A DNA stretch of 64,000 nt from Selaginella moellendorffii (lineage: Eukaryota > Plantae > Lycopodiophyta): assembly GCF_000143415.4 (NCBI RefSeq), contig NW_003314277.1:741878-805877 (forward strand), in the 5' to 3' direction. Made by a program: the position numbers and the translations under genes. This document shows positions 770-55,161 of the stretch, in pieces. Every line of letters starts with the position of its first letter. Position 1 is the first letter of the stretch. Below the pieces are notes generated by a model. It made no database searches, was not told the DNA's origin, and saw nothing but the letters and a program-made list of their open reading frames with translations.

Positions 770-2377
770 ATGGAGATGAGCGAGGAGCTCGGTATGATCT
801 AGGCGTCACGAATTATCTATAACAGTTTCTGTGTGTCAGATCCTTTTCTCGCTGCCTACGGCCGGGAGGTAAAGCATGCCAGGCTCCAGGACCGCTGCCT
901 CTACATCCCGTCTGGCTTCTTGGGCCGTTACAACCTGTCCAAGCTCTGGGTCCATCCAAACTACCTTTTCATGGATCAGTTCATTGCGGAGAAGTGGAGC
1001 AGGGTCGTGAATGAGAGGAAAGGGTTGAAGAACTTCCACATCGTCTCAACGCCAGGTATCGGCAAGACGTTCTATGGCCACTACTTCTTTCACAGTAGAG
1101 CTCAGGAAGGACAGAAAGTAGTGTGGAGGACCGAAGATCCAGAGTACTTCTTCTTCGACTTCTCGCTGGACGATCCTCTGGTGCTGCAATCGAACTGGTA
1201 TACTCGACCGCGGGGGTGGGACATGACGAGCGTCTGGCTCATCGTCGACGGGGGCTCGAGGGGAATAAGTCACCTGGGGCCTCTCATCCAGTGCGTCTCG
1301 CCAGATCGCACTGGCTACTACGAGTTCTCCAAGGACCATGGCTATATATGCCGCCTGGGAGCGTGGTCTCTCGAGGAGGCGCAGCAGTGCAACGAGGAGC
1401 TTGAGCTGGGAATGACAGACGAGGAAATCGGTGTCCGCTTTTACTACTGTGGCGGGCTACCAAGGCTTCTCTTCAACACGGAGAAGTTCTCGGTGGCCGC
1501 GCTCCAAGGGTTGGTGCACGAGGCAGCTGCCAGGGTGGAGAGCTGGAGAAATGTGCTCCACTGCACACTCAACTCGGACAAGGACCCCGCTGTTTCTGAT
1601 ATTCTGCTCCACTACCGTCTTACGACTGACAGATTCGACTCGAACATACACCTGGTGTTTGGCTCGGACTGCATTCAGAAGCTTGCTTTTGAAAGGTTTG
1701 AGGAGCAGGGGTTTCAGGCTTTCCGTGACTTTTTCGACTTATGCCGGGGATATCCGGTTGCAAACACCTTGGCGGGCAAAATATACCAGCAGCACGTCCA
1801 CAAGGTACTTGCCACTGGAGGTGACGAGTTTGATCTTCGATCCTTGGAAGAGGAAGGTGACGGCGTCGAACTCTTCCGTCGGAGGCCGACGTCAGTGAAG
1901 CGGCTGCGCGAGTGGAAAGTGTTCGTAAAGAAGCGGTGCGTGGGGTCTGGTTTCAACGTTTACTCCAAGGACGTGAGTCCTGCGGACGCTTATCGTGCAG
2001 GGGCGGAGGAATCACGGGGCCTTGCAGGCTTGCCTGACAATTGCTTCGTGGAGCCTTACGCGTCAAACGAGAAATCTTTCGACTCGTTGGTCACTCCGGA
2101 CGTAATTCTCCAGGTTACAACGTCAGCCACGCATCCGGTCTATTGGTCCAAGATCCACGAGCTCGTTCACGGGTTGGATGAGTTGCATGACAAGCTCAAG
2201 CTGGTGCGTCCCAAGCAGTACAAACTCATCTACGTCGTTCCCGAGCCTAGCTTTGAGGGATACACGTACCAGGGCTTCAAGAAAGACGATGGATCCATGT
2301 ATCAGAGAGATGTTGCCGGGATGGACAGGGTTCATCAGTATGTGATGACTGTTCCATGGAGTGCTCTTCAAAAGTGA
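770..2377 (+). CDS. Crinkler/RHS-like (CR) P-loop NTPase + PD-(D/E)xK restriction-endonuclease-fold protein, copy 1. Micro-exon 770-791, intron 792-839, exon 840-2377
   Basis: Walker A STPGIGKT, Walker B WLIVDG, VSPD, W-SLEE, GGLPRLLF, then PYASNEKSFDS..LQVT...H, IYVVP, QYV, which is the typical CR NTPase+REase layout. The ORF-track GTG start lies in a gtatga...tgtcag intron; splicing gives MEMSEELD-PFL in frame. Confidence 0.8.
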
Positions 2378-2605
2378 CTAAAACAGAAATCCGGTGGCTC
2401 TTGTTACAAACGAATCAAAGTTTAGTCTGCTCGCGTTATCTTTGCTAAGAACTTCATACTAAAGATCTGCAGGAGTGAGCCAGAAGTTACCACTTACAAG
2501 GCCATTGGACTGGCTCTCAACAAAACGAAACTGCGATTCATCTGTGAGCCAACACAACAATCGAACAATGATCTAAAAACCTCTTTTTTCTTCCAATGCC
2601 GCGCG

Positions 2606-3731
2606 ATGTTGTTGCGATTGAATCCAGAGCTCAAGGAGCCACCACCAGTAGCAGCGAGAAAGACCCACGCGCTGGATCCCAAGCGCGTCCACTTCTTCAA
2701 GTCCATGCTCAAGCTCCACGGTGACGCCAAGAACCTGGACGCCGGGCGAGCGGTCCACCTCCAGATGATCACCAGCGGCTACCACCGCGACCGCTACCTC
2801 TGCAACCTCCTCATCCAGATGTATGGCCGCTGCCGCAGCGTCCACGACGCCATCGCCGTCTTCCACACCGTGAGCCGCAAGAACGTCTTCACCTGGACCA
2901 TCCTCATCGTCGCTCACACCCACAACGGCCTCTTCTTCGAGGCCGTGGAGCTCTTCCGCGAGATGGACGTCCACGGCGTCCAGTCCGACGAGTTCACCTT
3001 CTCCGCCATCCTGGAAGCCTGCTCCAACCTCGGCCTCGCCTTCCTCTCGCTCGGCAAGACCATCCACTCGAGAATCCACCAGCAGGGCCTCAAACTCACG
3101 TCCGTCCTGGCGACTTCGCTCATCAGCATGTATGGCCGGTGTGGCTGCGTCAACCCGGCCGTGAAGATCTTCCACAGCCTCGAGAACCCGACGGTGATAT
3201 GCTCCACTGCCATGATCGACGCGTATGCCCAGAACGGGCATATCGAACAGGCTGCGGAGATCTTCGAGAGAATGCAGCTCCAAGGCCTGGATCCCGACTT
3301 GATCGCCTGGACTGCGATGATGACGGCGTATAACCAGCTCGGGCATGCCAGAGAGGCGCTGCTTCTCTTCCGGAAGATGGACCTCCAAGGTCTCGAGCCG
3401 GACAGGTTTGCATTCGTCGCTGCTATTGATGCTTGCTCTAGCATCCCGTCACTGGAGCAAGGCACTGTCCTCCACTCTCGCTTGCTAGCCTCGTGGGTGG
3501 AATGCGATGGTGTCGTCGGGAACGCGCTGCTAAACTTCTACGCCAAGGCGGGGCTTGTTCACGAGTCGAGGAGCCTCTTCTCGAGCATGAAAGTGAAGAA
3601 CGTCGTTGTCCTTGGAACTAGCCTCGTCAACATGTACAGCAAATGTGGAAGAAGCGGAAGAAGTCTTCAAGAGGATGCCCACGAAAGATAAAATCTCGTG
3701 GACTGCCATGGTGACTGCCTACGCTCAAAAC
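2606..3731 (+). pseudogene. Chimeric truncated PLS-class PPR gene (5' part of PPR-A fused to an internal piece of PPR-B)
   Basis: Nearly identical to 43044-44044, then jumps at cgt (3604-3606) to sequence matching 45584-45718, with a further 8-nt deletion; lacks E domain. Confidence 0.85.
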
Positions 3732-6399
3732 CATGGGAGAAGCGACGGCTCCCGGTGTGAGCTTGCTGCTACTGCCAGCACTTGTTAATCGTTGAGATGT
3801 TTCACAATGGCTTTCTGTATCATAGGCCTCCCGCAACGCTGTTGTAAAGTGATGGTGCTCGCCGTCCTTCTACACGTGAATGTGATAAGCCGATTTCTGT
3901 TGTCCAGAAAATGCCAATTAGATCTAAATTGAAAGGAGAGAAAACTGCATACCTGCAGATAATAACCATAGCTTATAGTGGAGGAAATGCCATTGATGTC
4001 GACAGTTATGTCACAGCCAGAACTAGCAACTCTTTTAGCTGTGTTTGACACAAGATGAATCTTCCGCAAACTGCACAATATGACTCCACTTGGGGAATAG
4101 GCAAAAGGGAAAACAATGCGTCTACCTTTACTAAGAACTCGCTGTCACTTGAATAAGTGACATCTAAGCTCATCGGTTCGCATGAGAGACTCTCGGACTC
4201 AGGCATCCAGTCTAACGAGATCTTCCTGGTATAAGGATTGTTGACTCGAAAACCAGAAGTTGTATGCCATGGGCCTCCAGTTCTCGATTCTGCACTGGAA
4301 ATCGTAAATGCTGGCTATCTAAAAACTGCGAGTCGATCTTACCTGGTCGTCGAAAACTCTCCCTTACACATACGCCCACGGCCGCTAAAGCAGCGAAAGA
4401 TTTTACATCTCGCTTGGCTCTTTCGGAAAAATCTAGTGGCTGTGTTTCCAGGTCCCCAGCCCTGAAAGCCGGATGTTTTGCAAGCTTTTTTAAAAAGTGG
4501 ATGTTAGTTGGAAGTCCAGCAACCTGGCGAATGCAATGTTAGTACTCAACAATAATTACAAAAAAAAAGAGCAAACCAACTTGCCTGAAAATTCGAGAGG
4601 CAATTATGCAGCTTCGCCAACGCCATATCGCGATCACTACCCCATACGACCAGCTTGGCTATCATAGGATCGTAGTGGACGCTTACAGCATCACTTTGCT
4701 CTACACCCGTCTCAATTCTCACTGCATTGACAAGATAAACTGCTTAGTATTCTTCAAGTTTGACACGAGTTACCAGTGGATGAAGCGGGAGGTGGATTAT
4801 AATGGTAAAGAACTCCAGCAGCAGGTAGAAAACCTCTTGGAACGTTTTCAGCATAGACCCGAGCCTCAAACGCATGACCTGCTTAGCTGCGATAATCTTC
4901 GGGAATAAGCGGTATACTCTTTTGCTCAAGTGGAAGGCTTTCGCCATTTGCGACACGAATTTGCCATTCCACCAAGTCTTGACGCGTCACCATTTCGGTG
5001 ACAGGGTGCTCAACCTGACCACAAGTTTAATTCAGCATATACAGAAACTAGTGGAAGTCCGTCCTTACTTGCAAACGTGTGTTCATCTCCATAAAGAAAA
5101 AATCTCCTGTTGCAGTGTCGACAATAAACTCGACAGGTAATTCACAGCCTTCGATAGAAAAGAAATTTAGATTTGATAGCAGCAAATCACAAAAGAGGAT
5201 ACCTTAGCCGCATTGACTGCTGCTTGTCCTATTGAGTTGCGAAAGTCGTCTGACATGAGCGGCTGGAATATTAAAAAAAAAAACATGGTGAAACAGCAAA
5301 CAGCCTGAAATATTGTCCTACCGCTGGTGCTTCCTCTATAATTTTCTGGTGGCGCCTCTGAACGCTACAGTCCCGTTCAAACAAATGAACAACGTTTCCA
5401 AAGCGGTCGCCAAAGATCTGTCAGCAAGTCTGTGATAAATTTCCAGATTGCAGAAAATCTCCCACCTGGACTTCTATGTGTCGAGGCTGTGCGATATACT
5501 TCTCAATCAAGACCCTGGTGTCGCCAAACGCAGCAGCAGACTCACGTAGAGCGCTTCTCAAACTGTCCAGAAACTCGTCTCTGCTGTGGACAATCCTCAT
5601 GCCCTGAACCAAAACTTTACAAGAGAAATTAGTAGTGTCGCCAACATGAAACAAAATACCAAAAAGAAAGCAAAAAACCAACCTTTCCTCCGCCACCAAG
5701 AACAGGCTTGATCAGAACGGGATAGCCAATCCGATCAGCCTCAGATTGCAGCAGCTCGTGGCTCTGATCATCCCCGTGGTATCCAGGAACAACAGGAACA
5801 TTAGCACCGCTCATAAGCTTTTTGGAGGCACTAAGGAGTTCCAAGATAGTTCTTATGGCTGGTTCTTTGAAGAAAAATGGAGATGGCGTACCTTTTGTCT
5901 CCCATCAAGCTAATCGCAGCTGCCGAAGGGCCAATGAATGTGATCCCAGACTCGTGGCAAGCCTGCGCAAACTTCGAATTTTCTGATAGAAATCCATACC
6001 CGGGATGGATTGCCTGAGAAGAAGTTGGATATGTATGGGTTGAGAAGAAAAGAAATGAAAGCTTACATCGGCTCCAGTGCGACGAGCAGCGTCGAGGATG
6101 GAAGTAGTGGACAAGTAGCTGAGCTGCGCAGAGGCGGGGCCGATAAACACTGCTTCATCGGCTCGACGGACGTGTAGCGAGTTTCGATCGGCATCACTGT
6201 AAACCGCCACCGTTTTTAATCCCAAGCTACGCGCGGTCTTGATGATCCGGCACGCAATCTCGCCCCTGTTCGCGATCAGGATCTTCTCGATCGGCTGCTG
6301 GGCCGGAGATTTCTCCACGGGAGGCGCTTGAGAGAAGGGATTGGCGAGCGAGCTCCAACATCGCTTGCTCCTCCTCGCAATGGATGCGGAATTTCCCAT
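3732..6399 (-). pseudogene. MCCA: 3-methylcrotonyl-CoA carboxylase alpha (biotin carboxylase) subunit pseudogene, copy 1
   Basis: Spliced exons give [62 protein letters not shown]. Frameshift at ~5135 (GCT GTG AAT TAC CT GTC GAG; the xNAGT codons are missing). Broken at GAVASPM before the biotinyl domain. Confidence 0.85.
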
Positions 6400-6899
6400 G
6401 GACGATCGGCAGCGCTAAAGATGAGCTAGAGAATGCGTGTCACCTGATCGAATCGAGGAGCCAGGACCTCCGCTGGAGAAAACCCTAGCCTTGAGATACC
6501 TTGTCGTGCTTATCCCGTGAAATAGTCTAATCACTTGAGAAGGAGACCTCTGGAGAAATGAGTGGAGGCTCCACGAATCCATTGCAAGGAGTGACAATAT
6601 CGACAGCTATCTTGCTAGTTGGTAGTGCGATAGAGAAAATTCACCTTCGACTCAATGGGGAGATATTTCTTCTTGGACAGTGATGTGCACTGCATATGCC
6701 CTCAAAGGGCATTTTCTGGAACTACTGGATCATGGCTTATAAACTCGTGAAATACTAACACTGATTTTTATATGACATGGCAGGACTGTGAATCTGAATC
6801 CGTCCTTGCTTTCTGAGTTTGATTAAGTTAGAATGGGGATTATGCAAGCTATGTGCGATAATCCCTATGAATCTGAGTGATCCTTGCGAGTGGAGGCTC

Positions 6900-7543: not shown

Positions 7544-7705
7544 CAGAAAAACAAGCTCACTCAGAGGCCCAGGACTTGAGCAACGAGTCCATACCTCTCT
7601 CGTAGATGGCCTTGGCAACGAAAGCGTCCTCCTGCTTCCCAAACCTCACCTCCCACTCCATCTCCATGGCCCTCTTTGCCGCTTCCTTGTCCCGTGCGTA
7701 GTCTG
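7544..7705 (-). pseudogene. Inverted 3' fragment of the TPR-SET gene
   Basis: Reverse complement of 25949-26109. Confidence 0.85.
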
Positions 7706-9667
7706 ACGTAGATTTTTCTCTAATTTGAAGTAGATGAGGATGGCTAGTGCAACCACTGCTAATCCAATAAACACAGTGAACACTTGGAAGACTATCCAGT
7801 TTGGAGTAACTTCAACTGTGGATGTCGTTGTCACTAGGAATGCTGTGTCATTATTGAGCTGGAGAATTGTCTCAGCAGTGGCAAGGGAAGGTTCCTTTTG
7901 GAGGTCATTTATGCTGAAGTAGAGACCTGGCAAGCTTCCTGCCACTGAACCAGCAATGAACACTGTCCGCCCCAAAGTTCTGATTAGTGGACGGTAGCCT
8001 GGCTTACCGGCCAACTTAAGTTGATGGAGTTGGCGAAACAATGAATCTTCCCACTCTAAGAGTGTCCTGCTCAAGGAGCCAGCACAAATTCCCAGGAATG
8101 CAATGACAAATGTCAGAAAAGACGCATAAACTTGTGTTCGACGAGAAGATCCATCTTTCCAATACTGCTTTCCAAAATGATGAACGTTGCTCACTTTCAA
8201 CAAGTCATTGAGAACTTCTTGGACGTTCATGTTGTCATATGCGGACAATTTTTTGAAACACGGTGGTGAATCAACCTTAACCAAGAAAATAAAACATCAG
8301 CCTCCAGAAAAAAAAAGTCATAGTATGGAACTCACCTTGAATTCTTCGTTCCCGCAGGTGATGTTCCCTCCTGGTTTCTTCGTCAACAGAAACTCTTTGA
8401 TGACAGTGCCGCACACCTTGTCGGTTTGCATACGAGAATACTTGTACTTAATGCCGGTGATGAGCATAACTTGGGAACCCGTCACGTTTTTTATACAAGC
8501 ATCGAATAGAACTGTGGGATTTGGCTCTTGGTCTCCTTCTAATGTTGTCTCAATGCATGTTGTCATCTGCTCCATCCCACTCAGCACACCTTCTGTGAGG
8601 CTGGCAAGGCTGGCGCCAATGGGAAGAGAGTCATTAAAACTAATTAGGACTGTCACCGGGAGGTTAAATTTGATGCTGTAAGATCCAAGATAGATGATAT
8701 GTTCATCTATAATATGATCCCAGTCCCAAAATGATCGAGATGTCTCACACTGAGAAGTGTTGAAGGCGAAGGAAACATCTTGGCCTTGCGTCAAGTCGTA
8801 TCCAATTATGCAAACTTGGCGACGGCAGGCGCACTCTAAGAATGGATAAGACAAGTAAGAAATAACATCCGGGATGTAGTTGATGGGAACTGATGGGCTG
8901 CATTCTCTAATATCATTGCTGTAGTAAGACCATGTCGAGTCGTTGGAGGGAATTTTCTCCTGGCTAATCCCTGTGGATATGTTGGACCTCGCACTGCTAG
9001 CAAAGTTGCTGAAATAAAATCCAGACTTGGTGAGAACTGGATGCGTGAATTTGGAAGATGGCATTGCGAAAGGTACTTTACTGAGAAGTAAGCCAAGATC
9101 CGGCGTACCGCTGGTTTTGTTCACTGAGACTATAGGTGCAGTGATCTTGCAGCGTTCGACAGCAGACGCCCCCATATCACTCATATCATTGATGCACAGG
9201 CGTAAGCTTATCCCCCAGTGAATCGCCATTTTCCAGATCAGACTAGTACCATGCTGGCGAATGACTCCTCCATACAAGTGTGGATCAGGCGAGTTGAAAA
9301 GATCAGCTTCTACAGTTTTGTTGTTGCTTCTCCAAACCCGCCATGCACTGAGCTTTTGATAAGCAGCAGCAACCTCCGTCATGCTAACACTGCTCGAATT
9401 TTTAGTTTCACCCCACACGAGTGCTGACGCAATGGAGGTGCTTGTGGCCCATTTGTAGAAGGGGTCGTTTGTTGTCGCAAACACGTTGGTTTCCCAACAA
9501 GTTGTACCTGTCTGTTTGATGAGATCAGAATAGAACTCACCTTCTGGCTTCTTTTTGTTCACACATAACGAGAAGACTAGCAGCACAGCTGTTGCAATTA
9601 CAATGGCAAATATGAATACTGCAATGGCAACAATGCTCGACGTCTTCCATGGCTTCCTTTCCGCCAT
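7646..9667 (-). CDS. Unknown multipass membrane glycoprotein, copy 1 (~653 aa; exons 9667-8336 and 8275-7646)
   Basis: Two long ORFs joined in phase by a 60-nt gtgagt...taag intron. N-terminal hydrophobic helix, Cys-containing ~450-aa domain with many N-x-S/T sequons, three C-terminal hydrophobic segments. Confidence 0.75.
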
Positions 9668-10519
9668 AAGTTCGCTAAACGAAAAAACAAAAAATGAAAG
9701 CTGTATCCTTCAAGGCTGTTAACAAGTCGAACCTATTGGCAAATTAAAGGAACATGGTAGTGGAGAATCTATTCAGTGCAACATGTCCTTCATCCCCAAC
9801 CGTAGCAGCAATAATGCAAATGATTCTTTCCACTGCCAGTAATTTGAAAAACAGTAATGCGTATGTGATTTGGAGGGACAACTTTTCCTCGATCTTGGAT
9901 TTGTCGCTCTAATGCATTTTTCCTATATTCTCCGGCACCTCCCAGAGGTGTCTCATTTGTGTCCATGGCTTCGTCCCCCATAAGTTCGCTCAAATTAAAC
10001 ATGGGCTCAGAAGCGGGACTTGGTTTCTTGTTAATACGGAAAGTGAAAAGTGAACTTGAAAGTGAAGGTTCACATGAATTTATTCATTATCAAGCATTTC
10101 TGACTTCCACTCAATGAAAGTTATTCTACTGCCACGTCGGCCTCTATCAGTGTTTAGAAAAAGGTAAATGTAGAAGACGAAAATTGCCTTAAGGATTTGG
10201 CTTGAATTAGAGCTTATTCCTGGACGTAGTCTCAGAGATGGAAACAAGAACCTTTCGTACTCGGCTTTACCAGTGTGAGATAGGACGCACTCCTGTCTAG
10301 ACTATATAAGACTCTCCAATGCACACCATGGCATCGTCCATGAAGCTGCCAACCTTGCCAAAGGCTAAGATTGCATCGACTACATTGGAGACTACATGAC
10401 AAAGGGGTTGTATGTAGGGAGCAACTCTCCAATCTACTAAGTTTGCAAGGTTATTTCCCACTAACCCTGGCACTTGGATCTTCCAAGTCGACCAGACACC
10501 ATTGTCCAATGTCCCTGTC

Positions 10520-15830: not shown

Positions 15831-17440
15831 AGATAATAAAGGATAAATTATTCTACCATATGAAAGAAAATTAATCTTGTATTTCTAAATTATAAAATAT
15901 TATAAAATTTTGATTGAAAACATTACTATTAAGAAAACTAAGTATGCAACATGCAATAAATTATTTGTTATTACTTTGATAAATATATTTGAGTTTATAA
16001 TTAATTTAAATGTGTATTTTATAATTACTTTTTACAAACTCCATCACACACATAATAATCATAGTTCATGCTAATATCAATCTTTTGTGTAAATGCATTA
16101 AAAATAATTCAAAATAATCAAATGAAATAAAATAAATATACACAATTTATATGTTAAATATATTTTTAATGTAAAATTAATTTGATATAAATGAGTTAAA
16201 GGTTTTGGAGGATAATGAATTTATTTTAGAGATTGTTATTATCTAAAAGTTAAAAGTTTAACTAAATGTAATTATAAACTATTAAGATTTTTTTAAAATT
16301 ATATAGTCATTATTTTATTTATTAATGCAATAGAAAGATATATTCTAATTCCCTTTTTATGTTTAAACATTTGTTTATTCTGGAATGTAAACTTAACAAA
16401 AATTTATAATAAATTCAATTACAAGTGGTGGAAATAACAGTGATACGTTAAAAGTTATTAAAATTCATCTATTTAGAAAAATAATTTTGTGACTATTATA
16501 AAAAATTAAAAAATAAATTTAGAAAATACCATCACCAAAATACACTATCATTGATAAAAAGAATGTAAATTATAAAGTCATTAGTAGTATAGTGGCATAA
16601 ACACTCAATAATATTTAACTTACAAATAATCTATTTCACATTACTTTCAAAATTAAATTAATAAATAAAACAAAAAAAATATTTAAAGAAAATTATTTTA
16701 AAATTTTATGTATCTCATAAGACATTAAAATTATTTCTAGATTTTAGCATTGCAATTTTGTGATTGAGCTTCCTACATAGCATTTTTGCTTGCCTTTAAC
16801 TTGTATTTCATAGCGATAGTTGCTTAAAATTTTATGTGTAATTAAAGACTATATTAAATTAATCTCTTTCTCAAAAACTATTATTTAAATTGTATAATAT
16901 ACTAATTTGTATTTAATTATTTTAATATAGTATGTAACTTTATGTATTACACTCATATATTATTTATATATTACATATTAGAATTTATATATTATGTATA
17001 CAACATGAAGTTTGGTTTATACTATATTTCTTTAGTTTGTGCACTTGTTGCATATCACATTTTAGAAAGTATAAATAATATATAGAAATATCATTAAATT
17101 TCTTTAAATTTAATATAAATTATATATATATATATTATATTATATATTTAAAAAAATTTATTTCAATGAAATTTTTTTAAAGGTTTTTTTTATATTTTTA
17201 AAATTAAATTGAAAAGCTTTTTCTTCTATATTATTGTTTATGGGAAATCCAAATTACTCTGTTTATTACGAGTTTAGTTTACATAAGTTTGTTGAATAAC
17301 AACACAAAAAATGTTATAAAAACAATTATTCAAAATTAAATATACTATTACTAACATTCTTCTAGATTTTTAGAGAAATAATTTTCATATTATCATCCCT
17401 AATTAATGACTAACATTATATAACAGGTGTTAGGGTTAAG
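15830..17440. other. Extremely AT-rich non-coding tract; 3' part shared with 40700-41200
   Basis: No ORFs in the track; almost only A/T; tatactatatttct.tagtttgtgcacttgttgcatatcacatttt recurs at ~40750. Confidence 0.7.
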
Positions 17441-17461
17441 AAACTACATTGTTTCGGGGAG

Positions 17462-19151
17462 ATGAGCTCGGAGCTCGGTATGATCTAGGCGTCACCAATT
17501 ATCTCTAACAAGTTTCTGTGTGTCAGATCCTTTTCTCGCTGCCTACGGCCGGGAGGTAAAGCATGCCAGGCTCCAGGACCGCTGCCTCCACATCCCGTCT
17601 GGCTTCTTGGGCCGTTACAACCTGTCCAAGCTCTGGGTCCATCCAAACTACCTTTTCATGGATCAGTTCATTGTGGAGAAGTGGAGCAGGGTCGTGAAGG
17701 AGAGGAAAGGGTTGAAGAACTTCCACATCGTCTCAACGCCAGGTATCGGCAAGACGTTCTATGGCCACTACTTCTTTCACAGTAGAGCTCAGGAAGGACA
17801 GAAAGTAGTGTGGAGGACCGAAGATGACGTTCCAGAGTACTTGTTCTTCGACTTCTCGCTGGACGATCCTCTGGTGCTGCAATCGAAATGGTATACTCGA
17901 CCGCGGGGGTGGGACATGACGAGTGTCTGGCTCATCGTCGACGGGGGCTCGAGGGGAATAAGCCACCTGGGGCCTCTCATCCAGTGCGTCGGATCGCCGG
18001 ATCGCACTGGCTACTACGAGTTCTCCAAGGACCATGGCTATATATGCCGCCTGGGAGCCTGGTCTCTCGAGGAACTGCAGCAGTGCAGCCAGGAGCTTGA
18101 GCTGGGAATGACAGACGAGGAAATCGGTGTCCGCTTTTACTACTGTGGCGGGCTACCAAGGCTTCTCTTCAACACGGAGAAGTTCTCGGTGGCCGCGCTC
18201 CAAGGGTTGGTGCACGAGGCAGCTGCCAGGGTGGAGAGCTGGAGAAATGTGCTCCACTGCACACTCAACTCGGACAAGGACCCCGCTGTTTCTGATATTC
18301 TGCTCCACTACCGTCTTACGACTGACAGATTCGACTCGAACATACCTGCGTGTTACCGGGTGCTGCACCCTCACTTGGTGTTTGGCTCGGACTGCATTCA
18401 GAAGCTTGCTTTTGAAAGGTTTGAGAAGCAGGGGCTTCAGGCTTTCCGTGACTTTTTCGACTTATGCCGGGGATATCCGGTTGCAAACACCATGGCGGGC
18501 AAAATATACCAGCAGCACGTCCACAAGGTACTTGCCACTGGAGGTTACCAGTTTGATCTTCGGTCCCTGGAAGAGGAAGGTGACGGCGTCGAACTCTTCC
18601 ATCGGAGGCCAACGTCAGTGAAGCGGCTGCGCGAGTGGAAAGTGTTCGTAAAGAAGCGCTGCGTGGGGTCTGGTTTCAACGTTTACTCCAGGGACGTGAG
18701 TCCTGTGGACGCTTATCGTGCGGGGGCGGAGGAATCACGGGGCCTTGCAGGCTTGCCTGACAATTGCTTCGTGGAGCCTTACGCGTCAAACGAGAAATCT
18801 TTCGACTCGTTGGTCACTCCGGACGTAATTCTCCAGGTTACAACGTCAGCCACGCATCCGGTCTATTGGTCCAAGATCCACGAGCTCGTTCAGGGGTTGG
18901 ATGAGTTGCATGACAAGCTCAAGCTGGTGCGTCCCAAGCAGTACAAACTCATCTACGTCGTTCCCGAGCCTATACACGTACCAGGGCTTCAAGAAAGACG
19001 ATGGATCCATGTATCAGAGAGATGTTGCCGGGATGGACAGGGTTCATCAGTATGTGATGACTGTTCCATGGAGTTTGCATTAAGCTCTTCAAAAGTGACT
19101 GAAACAGAAATCCCGTGGCTCTTGTTACAAAAGAATCAAAGTTTAAACTAA
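17462..19151 (+). pseudogene. CR NTPase+nuclease copy 2; 11-nt deletion at ~18971 frameshifts the last ~40 aa (ancestral stop 19083)
   Basis: Micro-exon MSSEL 17462-17477, intron 17478-17526; cccgagcct|atacacg versus cccgagcctagctttgagggatacacg in copy 1. Confidence 0.8.
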
Positions 19152-19285
19152 AACTTCTGCTCGCGTTACCTTTGCTAAGAACTTCATACTAAAGATCTCC
19201 AGAGGTTACCACTTACATCATCTGTGAGCCAACACAACAATCGAACGATGATCTAAAAACCTCTTTTTTCTTCCAATGCCGCGCG

Positions 19286-20397
19286 ATGTTGTTGCGATTG
19301 AATCCAGAGCTCAAGGAGCCACCACCAGTAGCAGCGAGAAAGACCCACGCGCTGGATCCCAAGCGCGTCCACTTCTTCAAGTCCATGCTCAAGCTCCACG
19401 GTGACGCCAAGAACCTGGACGCCGGGCGAGCGGTCCACCTCCAGATGATCACCAGCGGCTACCACCGCGACCGCTACCTCTGCAACCTCCTCATCCAGAT
19501 GTATGGCCGCTGCCGCAGCGTCCACGACGCCATCGCCGTCTTCCACACCGTGAGCCGCAAGAACGTCTTCACCTGGACCATCCTCATCGTCGCTCACACC
19601 CACAACGGCCTCTTCTTCGAGGCCGTGGAGCTCTTCCGCGAGATGGACGTCCACGGCGTCCAGTCCGACGAGTTCACCTTCTCCGCCATCCTGGAAGCCT
19701 GCTCCAACCTCGGCCTCGCCTTCCTCTCGCTCGGCAAGACCATCCACTCGAGAATCCACCAGCAGGGCCTCAAACTCACGTCCGTCCTGGCGACTTCGCT
19801 CATCAGCATGTATGGCCGGTGTGGCTGCGTCAACCCGGCCGTGAAGATCTTCCACAGCCTCGAGAACCCGACGGTGATATGCTCCACCGTATGCCCAGAA
19901 CGGGCATATCGAACAGGCTGCGGAGATCTTCGAGAGAATGCAGCTCCAAGGCCTGGATCCCGACTTGATCGCCTGGACTGCGATGATGACGGCGTATAAC
20001 CAGCTCGGGCATGCCAGAGAGGCGCTGCTTCTCTTCCGGAAGATGGACCTCCAAGGTCTCGAGCCGGACAGGTTTGCATTCGTCGCTGCTATTGATGCTT
20101 GCTCTAGCATCCCGTCACTGGAGCAAGGCACTGTCCTCCACTCTCGCTTGCTAGCCTCGTGGGTGGAATGCGATGGTGTCGTCGGGAACGCGCTGCTAAA
20201 CTTCTACGCCAAGGCGGGGCTTGTTCACGAGTCGAGGAGCCTCTTCTCGAGCATGAAAGTGAAGAACGTCGTTGTCCTTGGAACTAGCCTCGTCAACATG
20301 TACAGCAAATGTGGAAGAAGCGGAAGAAGTCTTCAAGAGGATGCCCACGAAAGATAAAATCTCGTGGACTGCCATGGTGACTGCCTACGCTCAAAAC
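19286..20397 (+). pseudogene. Chimeric PPR-A/PPR-B pseudogene copy 2 with extra 14-nt deletion at ~19887
   Basis: Same as 2606-3731 except loss of tgccatgatcgacg. Confidence 0.85.
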
Positions 20398-23065
20398 CAT
20401 GGGAGAAGCGACGGCTCCCGGTGTGAGCTTGCTGCTACTGCCAGCACTTGTTAATCGTTGAGATGTTTCACAATGGCTTTCTGTATCATAGGCCTCCCGC
20501 AACGCTGTTGTAAAGTGATGGTGCTCGCCGTCCTTCTACACGTGAATGTGATAAGCCGATTTCTGTTGTCCAGAAAATGCCAATTAGATCTAAATTGAAA
20601 GGAGAGAAAACTGCATACCTGCAGATAATAACCATAGCTTATAGTGGAGGAAATGCCATTGATGTCGACAGTTATGTCACAGCCAGAACTAGCAACTCTT
20701 TTAGCTGTGTTTGACACAAGATGAATCTTCCGCAAACTGCACAATATGACTCCACTTGGGGAATAGGCAAAAGGGAAAACAATGCGTCTACCTTTACTAA
20801 GAACTCGCTGTCACTTGAATAAGTGACATCTAAGCTCATCGGTTCGCATGAGAGACTCTCGGACTCAGGCATCCAGTCTAACGAGATCTTCCTGGTATAA
20901 GGATTGTTGACTCGAAAACCAGAAGTTGTATGCCATGGGCCTCCAGTTCTCGATTCTGCACTGGAAATCGTAAATGCTGGCTATCTAAAAACTGCGAGTC
21001 GATCTTACCTGGTCGTCGAAAACTCTCCCTTACACATACGCCCACGGCCGCTAAAGCAGCGAAAGATTTTACATCTCGCTTGGCTCTTTCGGAAAAATCT
21101 AGTGGCTGTGTTTCCAGGTCCCCAGCCCTGAAAGCCGGATGTTTTGCAAGCTTTTTTAAAAAGTGGATGTTAGTTGGAAGTCCAGCAACCTGGCGAATGC
21201 AATGTTAGTACTCAACAATAATTACAAAAAAAAAGAGCAAACCAACTTGCCTGAAAATTCGAGAGGCAATTATGCAGCTTCGCCAACGCCATATCGCGAT
21301 CACTACCCCATACGACCAGCTTGGCTATCATAGGATCGTAGTGGACGCTTACAGCATCACTTTGCTCTACACCCGTCTCAATTCTCACTGCATTGACAAG
21401 ATAAACTGCTTAGTATTCTTCAAGTTTGACACGAGTTACCAGTGGATGAAGCGGGAGGTGGATTATAATGGTAAAGAACTCCAGCAGCAGGTAGAAAACC
21501 TCTTGGAACGTTTTCAGCATAGACCCGAGCCTCAAACGCATGACCTGCTTAGCTGCGATAATCTTCGGGAATAAGCGGTATACTCTTTTGCTCAAGTGGA
21601 AGGCTTTCGCCATTTGCGACACGAATTTGCCATTCCACCAAGTCTTGACGCGTCACCATTTCGGTGACAGGGTGCTCAACCTGACCACAAGTTTAATTCA
21701 GCATATACAGAAACTAGTGGAAGTCCGTCCTTACTTGCAAACGTGTGTTCATCTCCATAAAGAAAAAATCTCCTGTTGCAGTGTCGACAATAAACTCGAC
21801 AGGTAATTCACAGCCTTCGATAGAAAAGAAATTTAGATTTGATAGCAGCAAATCACAAAAGAGGATACCTTAGCCGCATTGACTGCTGCTTGTCCTATTG
21901 AGTTGCGAAAGTCGTCTGACATGAGCGGCTGGAATATTAAAAAAAAAAACATGGTGAAACAGCAAACAGCCTGAAATATTGTCCTACCGCTGGTGCTTCC
22001 TCTATAATTTTCTGGTGGCGCCTCTGAACGCTACAGTCCCGTTCAAACAAATGAACAACGTTTCCAAAGCGGTCGCCAAAGATCTGTCAGCAAGTCTGTG
22101 ATAAATTTCCAGATTGCAGAAAATCTCCCACCTGGACTTCTATGTGTCGAGGCTGTGCGATATACTTCTCAATCAAGACCCTGGTGTCGCCAAACGCAGC
22201 AGCAGACTCACGTAGAGCGCTTCTCAAACTGTCCAGAAACTCGTCTCTGCTGTGGACAATCCTCATGCCCTGAACCAAAACTTTACAAGAGAAATTAGTA
22301 GTGTCGCCAACATGAAACAAAATACCAAAAAGAAAGCAAAAAACCAACCTTTCCTCCGCCACCAAGAACAGGCTTGATCAGAACGGGATAGCCAATCCGA
22401 TCAGCCTCAGATTGCAGCAGCTCGTGGCTCTGATCATCCCCGTGGTATCCAGGAACAACAGGAACATTAGCACCGCTCATAAGCTTTTTGGAGGCACTAA
22501 GGAGTTCCAAGATAGTTCTTATGGCTGGTTCTTTGAAGAAAAATGGAGATGGCGTACCTTTTGTCTCCCATCAAGCTAATCGCAGCTGCCGAAGGGCCAA
22601 TGAATGTGATCCCAGACTCGTGGCAAGCCTGCGCAAACTTCGAATTTTCTGATAGAAATCCATACCCGGGATGGATTGCCTGAGAAGAAGTTGGATATGT
22701 ATGGGTTGAGAAGAAAAGAAATGAAAGCTTACATCGGCTCCAGTGCGACGAGCAGCGTCGAGGATGGAAGTAGTGGACAAGTAGCTGAGCTGCGCAGAGG
22801 CGGGGCCGATAAACACTGCTTCATCGGCTCGACGGACGTGTAGCGAGTTTCGATCGGCATCACTGTAAACCGCCACCGTTTTTAATCCCAAGCTACGCGC
22901 GGTCTTGATGATCCGGCACGCAATCTCGCCCCTGTTCGCGATCAGGATCTTCTCGATCGGCTGCTGGGCCGGAGATTTCTCCACGGGAGGCGCTTGAGAG
23001 AAGGGATTGGCGAGCGAGCTCCAACATCGCTTGCTCCTCCTCGCAATGGATGCGGAATTTCCCAT
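20398..23065 (-). pseudogene. MCCA: MCCA pseudogene copy 2
   Basis: Apparently identical to 3732-6399, including the frameshift and truncation. Confidence 0.85.
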
Positions 23066-23579
23066 GGACGATCGGCAGCGCTAAAGATGAGCTAGAGAAT
23101 GCGTGTCACCTGATCGAATCGAGGAGCCAGGACCTCCGCTGGAGAAAACCCTAGCCTTGAGATACCTTGTCGTGCTTATCCCGTGAAATAGTCTAATCAC
23201 TTGAGAAGGAGACCTCTGGAGAAATGAGTGGAGGCTCCACGAATCCATTGCAAGGAGTGACAATATCGACAGCTATCTTGCTAGTTGGTAGTGCGATAGA
23301 GAAAATTCACCTTCGACTCAATGGGGAGATATTTCTTCTTGGACAGTGATGTGCACTGCATATGCCCTCAAAGGGCATTTTCTGGAAGTACTGGATCATG
23401 GCTTATAAACTCGTGAAATACTAACACTGATTTTTATATGACATGGCAGGAGGGTATCCCTGTGAATCTGAATCCGTCCTTGCTTTCTGAGTTAAGCAAG
23501 ATAGAAAATGTTGATTAAGTTAGAATGGGGATTATGCAAGCTACGTGCGATTAAATGGGGGATTCTGGGAAAAAAATTA

Positions 23580-24605: not shown

Positions 24606-26097
24606 TTGCGAGCGACGGCGATGGGGGCTGATACTCCTCTCCCTCTCGGCCGCGGCTTTCCCCGAGTTCATTCAGCACACCGATCCGGAGACGATGTGGT
24701 TGTCAAGCTGGGACGATTTGAGCAGTGTGTGGATGCCGCAAGTGCTTCTCTCTCCGTGGATCCCTGCCATCTCAAGAGTATATACTGGAAAGCTTTGGCG
24801 TTGCTCAAGTTCCATCTCTACAGCTGGTCATGCCAAGCTTTTGGGCGACGTTTTTAGGGTGGACGAGGCAATTGATCGATTTCACCAAAAATGCAACAAG
24901 CTTACCATCCAGAGCTACAACAGCAACAGTATCATGGCAGAGATTTGTGACTTTCTCCGGGCCTGGAGTGAAGGAGAGGAACTTCCATTTTTACCAGAGG
25001 TTGCAGACAACTTTTGCAAAGTGGAAGTAAGAAAATGCGAAGATCAGAGCAAGGGACGAGGCTTGGGACTCTTTACAACGACAAGCATCAAGAAGGCGAG
25101 TTCGTTCTTGTCAGCAACTCGGCAGCCTTTGAGCGAGGTGGTTACAGATCCATTTGCGATAGAAACACTGCAGTCCAGCTGCTCGACATGGCCATGAAGT
25201 CTCCGCGAGCATACAAGCTGATCCACAGCCTTGCAGGACCAGCGTGAAGTTCCCGCAATGGAGATCTTTCAGCTAAACTGGGCCACGCCGGAGAACTGGT
25301 CGATTGTCAGCACTGACAGTAGCAGGGAAGGTCTCCAAGGGATTACGGTGGAGAGAATTTTCGAAATCGTCAGCAAAGCTTCCTTCAACCCTAAGGTGCA
25401 GCTGCCTAGCCAGAACGAGTCGACGAACGAGCACGCTTCGCTACTTGGTTCGTCCCCGGTTTCATCAACCACTGCTGTGTTGGGAACGTTTCCCAGAGGA
25501 TGTTTGGCACCACTTTGCCACCCGAGACATCCAGGCCGGGGAGGAACTCGGGTTCTGCTACATCATCGGCGGCCATCCTTACAGCTCTCCTTCGAGTGTG
25601 CTTGCAAGAAGTGCGAGCTGGAGCGGCGGCTGGACGAGGATCTCGCGCAGGTGACGGGCTTCTACAGGGACTTGGCCGAGGCAAACCTTGAGTTTCGGTT
25701 CAAGGGAGGGATCAGTCCGGCCCGGATGGTGGTGAAGCTGGAGCAAGTGTTGGCGACAAAGCTCCAGGATGAGGAGGAGAGGCAGTGCGTGAGAGCGATC
25801 CACTGGTCGCTCTACCTGTGTTACTACCAGCAGGTGGAGGTTGGAAACGTGGTGGCGCTGCCGGAGGGGATTGCTCCAGCGATTATGGAGGCGATGCACA
25901 AGCTCACGGCTGGCAGCAATGGCAACGAGAGTTACGTGGAGACGATGGCAGACTACGCACGGGACAAGGAAGCGGCAAAGAGGGTGATGAAGATGGAGTG
26001 GGAGGTGAGGTTTGGGAAGCAGGAAGACGCTTGCGTTGCCAAGGCCATCCACGAGAGAGGTATGGACTCGTTGCTCAAGTCCAGGGCCTCTGAGTGA
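24606..26097 (+). pseudogene. TPR + SET-domain (SMYD-like methyltransferase) pseudogene
   Basis: TPR-like KLGRFEQCVDAASASLSVDPCHLKSIYWKALAL; SET motifs KGRGLGLFTT, FINHCC, FATRDIQAGEEL..CY; post-SET FECACKKC; several frameshifts. Confidence 0.8.
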
Positions 26098-26748
26098 GCT
26101 TGTTTTTCTGGAGTGTTTTTGTCCTATTTCTTCTTTTTCTACTACTACTCACTACTTCTCTTTCTTCTCTTCTGCTGTCCTACTACTACCTTAACCACTC
26201 GGCCAAAGCGACACTTCCATGAAACCGCTCTTTTCACAAAGTAATCCACGAAAGAAGGGATTGGTGAGCGAGCGCCATGATTTATTACACCGAGCAATCT
26301 AGTCAAGTATGCTTGAATTATACTGTTATACTACTGATTTCTAGAATTATATTTCATCAAACTAATCTAACAGCATTCAAATTAGACACTTCGAAGAAAT
26401 ACGCCCATAATACAACAAGAAAAAAGCTTGTGTTATAACAAAAGAATGAAGAGAAAATAGAAAATTAAATTTTGAAGCAATCTATTTCATGTCAATTATA
26501 CCTTACGAATGTATGCTCACATTATTTCCGCACTATATAATTTAACCTTTGCCCTTCATACTTATCGCATAATAAAACCCTAATTTGTCATACTTGGTTT
26601 TTTAATTAACATATTTCTTACATAAAAGAAGTTAAAGAATGCACGGAAAAGCTGGCTGGCCCCTGGGACAGCTAGACTAGAAAATCAAAGCGGAAACACG
26701 AAGCGAGCTATGCTTTTTTGTCTGTCAGAAAAATTAACATATGTTAGC

Positions 26749-28755
26749 TCAAAACAGAAGTAATGAAGATTTACCTGGAGAATCCCCTTGTTGCTGAACA
26801 TCTTTCTCATCATGTTGCTGACGTATTTTCTCTAATTTGAAGTAGATGAGGATGGCTAGTGCAACCACTGCTAATCCAATAAACACAGTGAACTCTTGGA
26901 AGACTATCCAGTTTGGAGTAACTTCAACTGTGGATGTCGTTGTCACTAGGAATGCTGTGTCATTATTGAGCTGGAATATTGTCTCAGCAGTGGCAAGGGA
27001 AGGTTCCTTCTCGAGGTCATTTATGCTGAAGTAGAGACCTGGCAAGCTTCCTGCCACTGAACCAGCAATGAACACTGTCCGCCCCAAAGTTCTGATTAGT
27101 GGACGGTAGGCTGGCTTACCGGCCAACTTAAGTTGATGGAGTTGGCGAAACAATGAATCTTCCCACTCTAAGAGTGTCCTGCTCAAGGAGCCAGCACAAA
27201 TTCCCAGGAATGCAATGACAAATGTCATAAAAGACGCATAAACTTGTGTTCGACGAGAAGATCCATCTTTCCAATACCGCTCTCCAAAACGATGAAGGTT
27301 GCTCACTTTCAACAAGTCATTGAGAACTTCTTGGACTTTGTTGTTGTCGTCTAGAAACAATTTTTTGAAACACGGTGGTGAATCCACCTTAACCAAGAAA
27401 ATAAAACATCAGCCTTCAGAAAAAAAAAGTCATAGTATCGAACTCACCTTGAATTCTTCATTCCCGCAGGTGATGTCCCTTCCTTGTTTCTTCTTCAACA
27501 GAAAATCTTTGATGACAGTGCTACCCACCTTGTCATCTTCCATACCAGAAGACTTGCCGGTGACATCCACAACTTGGCAACCCGTCACGTTTTTTGTACA
27601 AGCATTCATTAGAATTGTGGCATTTGGCTTTTGGTCTCCTTCTAACGTTGTCTCAATGCATGTTGTCATCTGCTCCATCCTACTCAGCACACCTTCTGTG
27701 AGGTTGGCAAGGCTGGCGCCACTGGGAAGAGAGTCATTAAATTGAATTTTGAATGTCACCGGGAGGTTAAATTTGATGCTGTAAGATCCAAGAAAGATGG
27801 TATGTTCATCTTGGATAACATCCCAGTCCCAAAATGATCGAGATGTCTCACACTGAGAAGTGTTGAAGGTGAAGGAAACATTTTGGCCTTGCGTCAAGTT
27901 GTATCCAATTATGCAAACTTGGTGACGGCAGGCACACTGTAAGAATGGATAAGACAAGTAAGAAATAACATCCGTCATGTAATTGATGGGAACAGATGGG
28001 CTGCATTCTCTAATATCATTGCTGTAGTAAGACCATGTCGAGTCGTTATAGGGAATTTTTTCCTGGCTAATCCCCGTGGATATGTTGGACCTCGCACTGC
28101 TAGCAAAGTTGCTGAAATAAAATCCAGTCTTGGTGAAAACTGGATGCGTGAGGTTGGAAGATGGCATTGCGAAAGGTACTTTACTGAGAAGTAAGCCAAG
28201 ATCCGGCTTACCGCTGGTTTTGTTCACTGCGACTATAGGTGCAGTGACCTTGCAGCGTTTGACAGCAGACAGATGTCCTGGATTGATGCACAGCCGTAAA
28301 CTTATCCCCCAGTGAATCGCCATTTTCCAGATCAGATTAGTACCATGCTGGCAAATGACTCCTCCATACACGTGTGGATCAGGCGAGTTGAAAAGATCAG
28401 CTTCTACAGTTTTGTTGTTGCTTCTCCAAACCCGCCATGCACTGAGCTTTTGATAAGCAGCAGCAACCTCCGTCATGCTAATACCGGTAGAATTTTTAGC
28501 TCCATCCAACACGAGTGCCGATGCAATGGAGGTGCTTGTGGCCCATTTGTAGAAGGGGTCGTTTGTTGTCGCAAACACGTTGGTTTCCCAACAACATGTA
28601 CCTGTCTGTCTGATGAGATCAGAATAGAACTCACCTTCTGGCTTCTTTTTGTTCACACATAACGAGAAGACTACAGCTGTTGCAATTACAATGGCAAATA
28701 TGAATACTGCAATGGCAACAATGCTCGACGTCTTCCATGGCTTCCTTTCCGCCAT
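26749..28755 (-). CDS. Unknown multipass membrane glycoprotein, copy 2 (~648 aa; exons 28755-27448 and 27387-26749)
   Basis: Paralog of 7646-9667; open frame kept and all indels in frame. Confidence 0.75.
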
Positions 28756-29756
28756 AAGTTCGCTAAACGAAAAAACAAAAAATGAAAGCTGTATCCTTCA
28801 AGGCTGTTAACAAGTCGAACGTATTGGCAAATTAAAGGAACATGGTAGTGGAGAATCTATTCAGTGCAACATGTCTTTCATCCTTACAATCATTTTGACC
28901 AACCGTGGCAGCAATAATGCAAATGATTCTTTCCACTGCCAGTGCCATCAGTTTTGGGTAATTTGAAAAGACAGTAATGCCTATGTGATTTGGAGGGACA
29001 ACTTTTCCTCGATCTTGGATTAATGCATTTCTCCGGTACCTCCCAGAGGTGTCTGGCTTCGTCCCCATAAGTTCGCTCAAATAAAACATGGGCTCAGAAT
29101 CAGGACTTGATTTCTTGTTAATACGGTAAATGAAGAGTGCTCGCGTGTCGAGGCGCTGGGAGCGGAAGATTGGGGCTTGACAATGGAGGAATTGGATCGC
29201 TTGGAGCATAACGCTGCTCAGCAAGTTGCGGCCAGGCGCAGCGCGGCTGCATTTGGTTTGCCACACGCCCAGAGCTGCTGGCCAGAAGCATGGATGGAAG
29301 AGCACCTCCACATCATGTTCCATCGCCAAAGAGAAGCTATTTCTCAAGGTGTCCAAGCAGCCCGATGAGAAAATCGGGTTATGATGAGGTGAGTGTTGTT
29401 TTTCTCTTTTTTTTTCCAGGCTTACAACATTGCTGTTATTCTGTTATACAGAGCTTGGTCGCGGCTTACAAAACTGTGGTTGGTCAAGAATGGGTGACAA
29501 ACTTGCGGTTGTTTTGTTTTTTTTCCCGCTGAATGTATTTTTCGCAGTTTATGGACTTATCCAGAGCATCGACTGCCCGAAACTGACAAGAATTCCAGGT
29601 GTTGAAATTGATGTTAGCTTTCGTTTGTGTTTACGACCGTTTTTGTGTGTTAGGCAGATACAACTAGTTTACAAAGGAGCAATATATGTTGACTTTGAGG
29701 CATATATGTTGGATAGAAAGACGTAATTACATCCTTCTAAGTTGAATATGATACAG

Positions 29757-31739: not shown

Positions 31740-32581
31740 TTTAGATTTATTGACACAATGTGATTACCCATATGTGAAAAAAGCAGTGGTGATGAACATA
31801 TTTAGAATATGTTTGGATATTTTACCATCTAACAGTTGTTATTTATTTGGATTAATCTTTTAAACATGTTTAGAATGCATAAACTTTCCTCAACACTTCC
31901 TAGTATATTTAGCTTGGTCAAACTTTGGGTGGTCAACTCCACACTCCTTATTAGACTTTTAGTTCATATATAGATTGTTAGCCTTTATTTTATATCCATT
32001 ATGTTAGATTTGGACTTGAGCTCCATTTTAAACTCGAGTTCTGGCTCAAACATGGACACATGGGGTGAAAGCCCAAAATACTTGTTTCATTGAGGTGTGA
32101 GAGGTTGTGAAGGATAATGGGGGATGGGAGTGTAAGGTAATCATTCTATCATTTAAAAGTTGATATAAAATGGTTCATTGCTAATAGTAGATCATGGAAA
32201 AGGTCCCATAAGATCAAATGCCACAAACACAAACGGATGGGAAATTACAATTTACTTCAACTGTCCTTTCGTAGTACGAGGGAGAGTTTTACGAGCTTGA
32301 CACCAAACATAGCTATGCACATATTAGATAATATCATATCGCATTTCTGGCCAATAGAAATACTTGTGCAGCTTCTTGGTCACACGACAATGTCCCATAT
32401 GCCTATCTAGAGTAGGAGAATTATGGTAAACATGAAGAAACTGTAGAATAAATATTGAAGGCATCACTAGCCATAAATGATCATTAGGATTTGTTCTTAC
32501 AAAATAAAGAGGGCCGTCTTCAAAGCGATATTGACAATGTAAATGCCGGAATGGCAAGTCATTAGCAAGTGATGCAAGATT
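31740..32581 (-). mobile_element. Ty3/Gypsy pol (integrase) relic interrupted by the LTR element; probably continues at ~40010-40200
   Basis: YHNSPTLDRHMGHCRVTKKLHKYFYWPEMRYDI..C (H2C2 zinc finger) and HPFVFVAFDLMGPFP (integrase core start), with stops. Confidence 0.75.
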
Positions 32582-33081: not shown

Positions 33082-33113
<32 letters not shown>

Positions 33114-38243: not shown

Positions 38244-38346
38244 GGCTAGGTGCCAAGGATGGAAATGGTAACACATGCGGGTGTTACTTTATAAAGTGGT
38301 TTACCGTTCGATGAGGACATCGAACTTCGTCTATGGGTGGTGGAGT

Positions 38347-38858: not shown

Positions 38859-38890
<32 letters not shown>

Positions 38891-53027: not shown

Positions 53028-55161
<2,134 letters not shown>

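Follow-up and report, generated by a model that had tools for sequence, protein, structure and literature searches.

Tandem genes of a Selaginella moellendorffii orphan family encode putative surface glycoproteins with variable ectodomain patches

The window analyzed here is a 64,000-nucleotide (nt) stretch of the Selaginella moellendorffii genome (RefSeq assembly GCF_000143415.4, contig NW_003314277.1, positions 741,878 to 805,877 of the forward strand). On its minus strand it carries two copies of a gene for a protein with four predicted transmembrane (TM) segments, at 7646-9667 (copy 1) and 26749-28755 (copy 2), where a first-pass annotation made from the letters of the DNA had placed them. 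The gene probably encodes a lineage-restricted surface glycoprotein that evolves by birth and death, with hypervariable loops in its ectodomain and gene conversion between paralogues.

Results

Gene structure of the tandem pair

Copies 1 and 2 are an intact tandem pair of a gene whose two exons are separated by a 60-nt intron. Copy 1 is present in RefSeq as the S. moellendorffii 'uncharacterized protein LOC9642340' (P0001, 653 amino acids), and our two exons sum to the same length. For copy 2 the proposed start stands but the end at 26749 probably does not. It is a read-through stop and likely not the true one, since the annotated protein (P0002) continues through a further intron of 53 nt into a last exon of 14 nt. 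The two genes are laid out as follows:

8336-9667, minus strand: copy 1 exon 1, 444 codons for TM1 and most of the ectodomain (from the open reading frame (ORF) and splice site; 100% identical to P0001)
8276-8335, minus strand: copy 1 intron, 60 nt, GT..AG, phase 0, with an in-frame TGA inside and 2 mismatches to the copy 2 intron
7646-8275, minus strand: copy 1 exon 2, codons 445-653 and the stop, for the end of the ectodomain, TM2, TM3, the TM3-TM4 loop, TM4, and the tail
9668-9784, minus strand: proximal 5' flank of copy 1, a probable 5' untranslated region or core promoter, with 1 mismatch per 100 nt between the copies
27448-28755, minus strand: copy 2 exon 1, 436 codons
27388-27447, minus strand: copy 2 intron, 60 nt
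26775-27387, minus strand: copy 2 exon 2 (the P0002 C-terminus demands splicing after 26775)
26774-26722 (53 nt) and 26721-26708 (14 nt, ending in ..DKKA and the stop), minus strand: copy 2 second intron and last exon, read against P0002

The reading frames of both copies are maintained. Each is open over ~650 codons, and the probability of meeting no stop given 117 random substitutions is 0.019. All the coding indels keep the frame, in agreement with the first-pass annotation; the four between the copies are of 6, 9, 9, and 3 nt. The older GenBank models P0002-P0005 excise 33 nt as an intron (9508-9540 in copy 1 and the equivalent in copy 2). Because distant paralogues conserve the peptide it encodes, EFYSDLI.., the excised segment is coding and the four models are misannotated there. 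Farther upstream of the conserved 9668-9784 flank, the alignment of the copies is indel-rich with 14-32 gap columns per 100.

Variable patches in the ectodomain

The five pairs of divergent peptides singled out at first pass are all present in copies 1 and 2. Five variable patches were delimited in the ectodomain:

9380-9421, minus strand: patch 1, residues 83-96, with indels here also in the paralogues P0003, P0004, and P0005
9149-9202, minus strand: patch 2, residues 156-173, the loop between the conserved Cys158 and Cys173, with a 9-nt tandem duplication in copy 1
8690-8722, minus strand: patch 3, residues 316-326, with three-state codons 318-320 and 326
8405-8530, minus strand: patch 4, residues 380-421, with a 9-nt indel
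8216-8254, minus strand: patch 5, residues 452-464

Hot intervals, those with at least 5 of 10 residues different, cover residues 83-96, 156-173, 380-393, 396-421, and 452-464. The patch at 316-326 is variable as had been claimed but falls below this threshold. Within patch 4 a cysteine has moved in copy 1: residues 398 and 419 are Ser and Cys there but Cys and Gly in the other paralogues.

Amino-acid differences in the ectodomain are clustered, with a dispersion of 1.92 versus 0.81 in permutations (p<5e-5, 10-residue bins), whereas the synonymous differences between copies 1 and 2 are not (p=0.36). Non-synonymous changes concentrate at the sites that vary among P0003, P0004, and P0005 (odds ratio (OR) 5.7, p=5.6e-13) and synonymous ones do not (p=0.36). 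Moreover, columns variable in the window's subfamily also vary in other subfamilies (OR 2.9, p=3e-6). When a third copy from the same array (L001, described below) is included, 24 codons of the ectodomain are in a different state in each copy versus ~13 expected (p=0.0004); changes have fallen repeatedly on the same codons along separate branches. Multi-hit codons number 19 versus 7 expected, a count never reached in 50,000 permutations. Selection, multi-nucleotide mutation, and conversion are each able to produce such an excess.

As had been noted at first pass, the TM segments, the intron, and the 5' flank are nearly identical between the copies. Mismatches number 0-3 per 100 nt over the flank, TM1, and TM2-TM4 (1-2 for TM2-TM4 taken separately) versus 8-16 in the variable stretches. 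Across the 5' flank and TM1 (9784-9585) the figure is 0-1 mismatch per 100 nt.

Selection tests

Codon analyses of the window's subfamily (subfamily A) were made on three copies only, copies 1 and 2 and L001. With the third copy as reference the three are about equidistant. The ratio of non-synonymous to synonymous divergence (dN/dS) was calculated per region by the Nei-Gojobori method (NG86), and the maximum-likelihood (ML) estimates used GY94 with F3x4. By region the values are:

Ectodomain, residues 41-485: dS 0.080, dN 0.090, dN/dS 1.12 (Fisher p=0.81 versus 1)
TM2-TM4, residues 486-630: dS 0.019, dN 0.016, dN/dS 0.83 (2 synonymous and 5 non-synonymous changes)
N-terminus and TM1: no non-synonymous change

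At silent sites too, TM2-TM4 has diverged less than the ectodomain (dS 0.019 versus 0.080, p=0.03). The identity of the TM part is therefore not a sign of stronger protein constraint; it is more likely that this part was homogenised by gene conversion.

The first-pass annotation had proposed diversifying selection on the ectodomain, to be dropped if the ectodomain dN/dS were 1 or less and similar to that of the TM region. At 1.12 and 0.83 the two regions come near to that outcome, with the ectodomain value just above 1. Nor do the other tests bear the proposal out, as the counts on individual branches are neutral (see Discussion) and the signal from site models is lost without multi-hit codons. 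Model M2a was favored over M1a in a likelihood ratio test (LRT 44, p=2.5e-10) through a degenerate class with omega ~99 for 3.5% of sites. The LRT drops to 17 without the codons at most 8 from an indel and to 1.4 without the 19 multi-hit codons. Resting on multi-hit codons and codons near indels, the M2a signal was rejected as evidence of selection.

Sites chosen without the window copies behave differently. At those variable among P0003, P0004, and P0005, dN is 0.286 and dS 0.115 for a dN/dS of 2.49 (p=0.069). Using only the sites where P0003 differs from P0004, with counts made tree-wide, the ratio is 1.88 (p=0.079). That the loops evolve under positive selection is plausible, and adaptive diversification of the patches is at most suggested.

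Membrane topology and predicted structure

The topology proposed at first pass, four hydrophobic segments with a loop of ~450 residues rich in cysteines and sequons between TM1 and TM2, agrees with both hydropathy and predicted helices:

9566-9634, minus strand: TM1, residues 12-34, a signal anchor or long signal peptide (Kyte-Doolittle peak 3.2; predicted helix 10-35)
8069-8125, minus strand: TM2, residues 495-513 (hydropathy; predicted helix 487-511)
7910-7981, minus strand: TM3, residues ~543-566, Gly/Ser-rich (predicted helix 539-567)
7802-7897, minus strand: TM3-TM4 loop, residues 571-602, EP.LAT...FLVTTTST.EVTP (predicted beta-hairpin; the most conserved stretch of the family)
7727-7798, minus strand: TM4, residues 604-627 (hydropathy and predicted helix)

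By hydropathy TM1 (12-30), TM2 (495-513), and TM4 (609-627) are clear; TM3 is weak in copy 1 and above threshold in the family members P0007 and P0010. The ectodomain of P0001 has 12 conserved cysteines (57, 158, 173, 256, 279, 281, 286, 307, 371, 391, 438, and 450), which probably form six disulfides. Nine sequons of P0001 are in the ectodomain and one is in the TM3-TM4 loop, so that a lumenal or extracellular position fits both. From these features we infer a surface location, glycosylation, and disulfide bonds.

Two AlphaFold2 models (targets P0001 and P0010) share the order of their secondary structure, and in each the TM3-TM4 loop is a long beta-hairpin, formed in model 1 by strands 571-585 and 588-602 and in model 2 by their equivalents. 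This hairpin is predicted with low confidence. Residues L591, T594, T595, and W604 are near-invariant in the family alignment.

An orphan family with at least four subfamilies

Five further paralogues were found at 37-82% identity. Word searches and family scans left the protein open and the claim of an orphan family rests on absent relatives; for that reason we scanned 1.84 billion representative proteins exhaustively with a HMMER profile of six paralogues. It gave nine matches, all from S. moellendorffii, and profile E-values for family members ranged from 1e-18 to 0. A word search seeded with the family alignment yielded no more than the six already-known proteins, missing the distant subfamilies, and therefore adds nothing on distribution. 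No relatives were found by pattern scan and tblastn of IMG/VR, GTDB genomes, and JGI metagenomes. Pfam has nothing for the family in either exon, P0001, P0006, or 18 members; two members match Peptidase_C25_C weakly. Comparison with PDB sequence profiles gave only chance-level uS19 matches (E>=0.06), and Foldseek against PDB and BFVD found no match at E<=0.001 for the low-confidence models. The first-pass statement that the protein matches no known receptor, channel, or fusogen family thus stands, with the Pfam, PDB sequence, Foldseek, and 1.84-billion-protein searches all empty outside the species.

The family comprises at least four subfamilies, 22-37% identical to copy 1, which share the N-terminal hydrophobic segment and three more, the 12 ectodomain cysteines, and the highly conserved TM3-TM4 loop. 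Common to P0001-P0019 are the motifs DPFYKW, SPDPH, W.M.I.WG, YLSNFASNART, and FLVTTTST.EVTP.W, and the full-length architecture is shared. One member, P0011 (SELMODRAFT_427541, 764 amino acids), has an inserted stretch with a weak subtilase (Peptidase_S8) match and is probably a chimeric gene model.

In the subfamily C paralogues (L002 and L003) the ectodomain dN/dS is 0.27-0.36 and the silent divergence of the TM part is normal. Subfamily C is under purifying selection, and the orphan family is therefore functional at the family level. The subfamily C loci are syntenic on two haplotype scaffolds, among ordinary plant genes; L002 (10001-12014 and 19972-21986) and L003 are two haplotype versions of one locus. 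Their single intron of 55-56 nt is in phase 1 after codon 565, while that of the window's subfamily is in phase 0 after codon 444, so introns were gained or lost within the family. Taken together, the intron sites and the synteny favor an old endogenous spliced family over a recent viral or transposon insertion.

The tandem array and its damaged members

The two copies, separated by ~19 kb, belong to a repeated unit in which a PPR gene is found as well. By self-BLAST the gene block at 7703-10052 is 90.9% identical to 26818-29139. The region 772-6859 is 96.8% identical to 17458-23551, and part of it recurs at 41207-44044. The neighbours in the window are ordinary plant genes, for example those for PPR proteins.

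The end of copy 1 is chimeric:

7544-7705, no strand assigned: inverted 162-bp copy of 25949-26110 (self-BLAST, 95.7% identity)

The source, 25949-26110, is the 3' end of a plus-strand ORF at 25231-26097 (288 amino acids, no Pfam match). Copy 1 is homologous to copies 2 and 3 only as far as CGTCAG at 7703, and the inverted fragment provides the last 19 codons of copy 1 (635-653) and its stop codon. Copy 1 thus no longer has the tail, second intron, and last exon that are normal for the family. Unit 1 also lacks most of the gene corresponding to ORF 25231-26097.

The third array copy (L001:10001-12100, GL377581.1, the P0005 locus) is on the same scaffold and looks like a pseudogene. Its 5' end including the ATG has been replaced, a 10-nt frameshift deletion is hidden in the gene model by an artificial intron, and a CAA-to-TAA change gives a premature stop after ..EKNLRQ.

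Other features of the window

A ~6 kb segment that carries the PPR gene is present three times (772-6859, 17458-23551, and 41207-44044) at 95-97% identity. These repeats define tandem units of ~17-24 kb in which the four-TM gene block is the most diverged part, and they also carry an ORF of 514-543 amino acids (833-2377, 17520-19151, and 41269-42840) with no Pfam match. Elsewhere in the window the following were seen:

16001-18000: AT-rich stretch (GC 0.28) between repeated units
32578-34224 and 38343-40005: 1.65-kb direct repeats (95.6%) around strong GC skew (0.20-0.27); between them are an ORF matching an integrase zinc-binding domain and internal short tandem repeats, and this is probably a long terminal repeat (LTR) retrotransposon
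53403-54023: ORF fragment similar to myo-inositol-1-phosphate synthase (NAD_binding_5, E 2e-44)
59516-61333, plus strand: 605-amino-acid ORF with five SHIPPO (sperm-tail PG-rich) repeats (E 3.5e-69), antisense to the 5' part of a PPR ORF
57014-60175, minus strand: that PPR ORF, 1053 amino acids

Discussion

The two loci are young tandem paralogues in a family seen only in S. moellendorffii. An N-terminal signal anchor or signal peptide would be followed by an ectodomain of ~450 residues with about nine N-glycosylation sequons. In the conserved membrane module that comes next, a short cytoplasmic loop would connect TM2 to TM3, and an extracellular loop of 32 residues (the predicted beta-hairpin) would connect TM3 to TM4. 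Copies would arise by tandem duplication and some would decay, as the third copy has and as copy 1 may be doing with the loss of its native 3' end. Gene conversion between paralogues would keep the 5' end and the TM module near-identical, even at silent sites, with amino-acid, multi-nucleotide, and in-frame slippage-indel changes gathering in the five ectodomain loops. These variable loops may contact a changing partner, and the TM module may anchor or oligomerise the protein. By analogy with other systems the protein probably acts in extracellular recognition or binding.

Several points weigh against this interpretation. The recognition role is drawn solely from analogy. The overall dN/dS is ~1 (NG86 1.09-1.12; ML omega 1.39, p=0.16 versus 1), and for the 369 codons remaining outside the independently chosen variable sites it is 0.73, indistinguishable from 1. 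Non-synonymous to synonymous counts per branch (N:S) are 26:7 and 24.5:6.5 for the intact copies and 22:8 for the broken one, versus a neutral 3.67:1. Given a dN/dS near 1 and branch counts like those of a pseudogene, the window's subfamily may simply drift. The mean predicted local distance difference test (pLDDT) values of the two AlphaFold2 models are 52.6 and 48.4, and because both models are poor, statements at the level of the fold and the lack of fold matches carry little weight. The family was seen only in S. moellendorffii, a restriction that may reflect sampling. No expression evidence for the copies was found in the literature on the gene identifiers or in the supplements of an expression-atlas preprint.

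That the copies are redundant young duplicates drifting to pseudogenes, with the patches nothing more adaptive than the least constrained, slippage-prone loops, is possible though somewhat doubtful. The dN/dS not different from 1 over the whole gene or the ectodomain and the branch counts are as expected under relaxed constraint. So are the broken array member, the missing native 3' end of copy 1, the M2a signal coming wholly from multi-hit codons, and the location of the variable patches in or beside low-pLDDT segments. However, both frames have stayed intact despite 117 substitutions (p=0.019) with all four indels in frame. The dN/dS of 2.49 at the independently defined variable sites is above the neutral ceiling (p=0.069), and the sister subfamily C is clearly under purifying selection, so the family is functional. 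Conversion alone could also produce a mosaic of this kind, if the 5' end and TM module were recently homogenised and tracts were imported from other paralogues, with no site-specific selection. We regard this as unlikely. In its favor, the silent sites of TM2-TM4 are less diverged, a 100-nt ectodomain stretch (9384-9285) is without any difference, and the gene block is more diverged (90.9% identity) than the neighbouring duplicated DNA (96.8%). Informative amino-acid sites among the five close paralogues support incompatible groupings, in blocks: copy 2 with P0003 versus copy 1 with copy 3 at residues 283-301, P0003 with P0004 elsewhere, and P0004 with copy 1 at 403, 570, and 609. Against conversion alone, amino-acid differences cluster within the ectodomain and synonymous ones do not. 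In the five patches all five paralogues differ mutually with no donor seen, and the columns that hold the patches tend to vary in other subfamilies as well.

It is highly improbable that the gene encodes a four-TM channel subunit of the connexin, pannexin, or LRRC8 type, with a giant first extracellular loop and the patches on its vestibule. Like the connexin, pannexin, innexin, and LRRC8 families, the protein has four TM segments and a second extracellular loop predicted as a beta-hairpin, and pannexin-2 ranked second (model 1) and first (model 2) in Foldseek against PDB, with LRRC8A and connexins also listed. These matches are non-significant (E 0.07-2, probability <=0.21, TM-scores 0.08-0.25; best result, E 0.07 with probability 0.14) and were obtained with low-confidence models, leaving the pannexin-type ranks as a lead only. 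Pfam gave no match to the Connexin, Innexin, or Pannexin-like families, and the first loop here differs in its length of ~450 residues. No cysteine is conserved in the second extracellular loop (subfamily B alone has one there); therefore the inter-loop disulfides that define these families are impossible. None of the four families is known from plants.

It is hardly credible that an envelope or fusogen-type glycoprotein of a virus or transposon was domesticated here, or that the gene encodes a HAP2-type gamete fusogen. A Cys-rich glycosylated ectodomain followed by C-terminal membrane segments, rapid evolution, and restriction to one species would all suit such a protein. Reproductive proteins often evolve fast, and in 2014 Maumus and colleagues reportedly described giant-virus-like insertions in the S. 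moellendorffii genome. The ectodomain resembles those of HAP2/GCS1 and class II fusogens in being rich in cysteines and predicted beta-strands, but HAP2/GCS1 fusogens are single-pass type I proteins, whereas here three hydrophobic segments follow the ectodomain. Foldseek gave no fold match, which is weak evidence at a pLDDT of 48-53. IMG/VR held no relative by pattern or tblastn and BFVD no fold match, and no Pfam HAP2-GCS1 or viral glycoprotein match was found in 18 members (E<=1). Spliceosomal introns are present at positions that differ between subfamilies, the loci are among ordinary host genes and syntenic between haplotypes, and the nearest transposon-like sequence in the window is unrelated and >3 kb away. 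On the lack of viral relatives, the host-gene context, the introns, and the synteny, a viral or transposon origin was rejected.

Similar to tandemly arrayed LRR receptor-like proteins and DUF26/CRK receptors, which have hypervariable patches exposed to solvent, this family duplicates in tandem, undergoes birth and death, exchanges sequence between paralogues, and keeps a conserved scaffold on which amino-acid change is focused in a small number of ectodomain patches. Unlike plant receptors it has no LRR, DUF26, lectin, LysM, malectin, or kinase domain in Pfam and is multi-pass, not single-pass, and its ectodomain dN/dS does not differ from 1. ENaC/ASIC and P2X channels share a large disulfide-rich glycosylated domain, predicted here, between TM1 and TM2 but have two TM segments; here there are two more and a TM3-TM4 loop, with no Pfam or PDB similarity. 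Tetraspanins, which in plants act in cell-cell recognition, also have four TM segments and a Cys-rich extracellular loop. Their large loop is the second, of ~100 residues and with a CCG motif, while here it is the first, of ~450 residues and without adjacent cysteines, and there is no PF00335 match.

A more ambitious form of the surface glycoprotein interpretation seems to us distinctly unlikely. In it a six-disulfide scaffold would display five hypervariable loops that point changes, slippage indels, and gene conversion among paralogues diversify under positive selection, and serve in gamete, spore, or microbe recognition, with the three-TM module perhaps forming a channel-like oligomer. The family would then be a previously unrecognised class of plant cell-surface proteins confined to Selaginella.

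Tandem birth and death with conversion is an ordinary mode of evolution, and RefSeq and UniProt already list the genes as uncharacterised entries; the novelty is as a protein family only. If the copies are drifting duplicates, they form a routine orphan gene cluster. Plant surface recognition is dominated by LRR, lectin, and kinase receptors. If the loops are instead under diversifying selection, this would be a recognition family unrelated to those receptors that arose in the lycophyte lineage, and it would offer a new entry into lycophyte reproduction or immunity.

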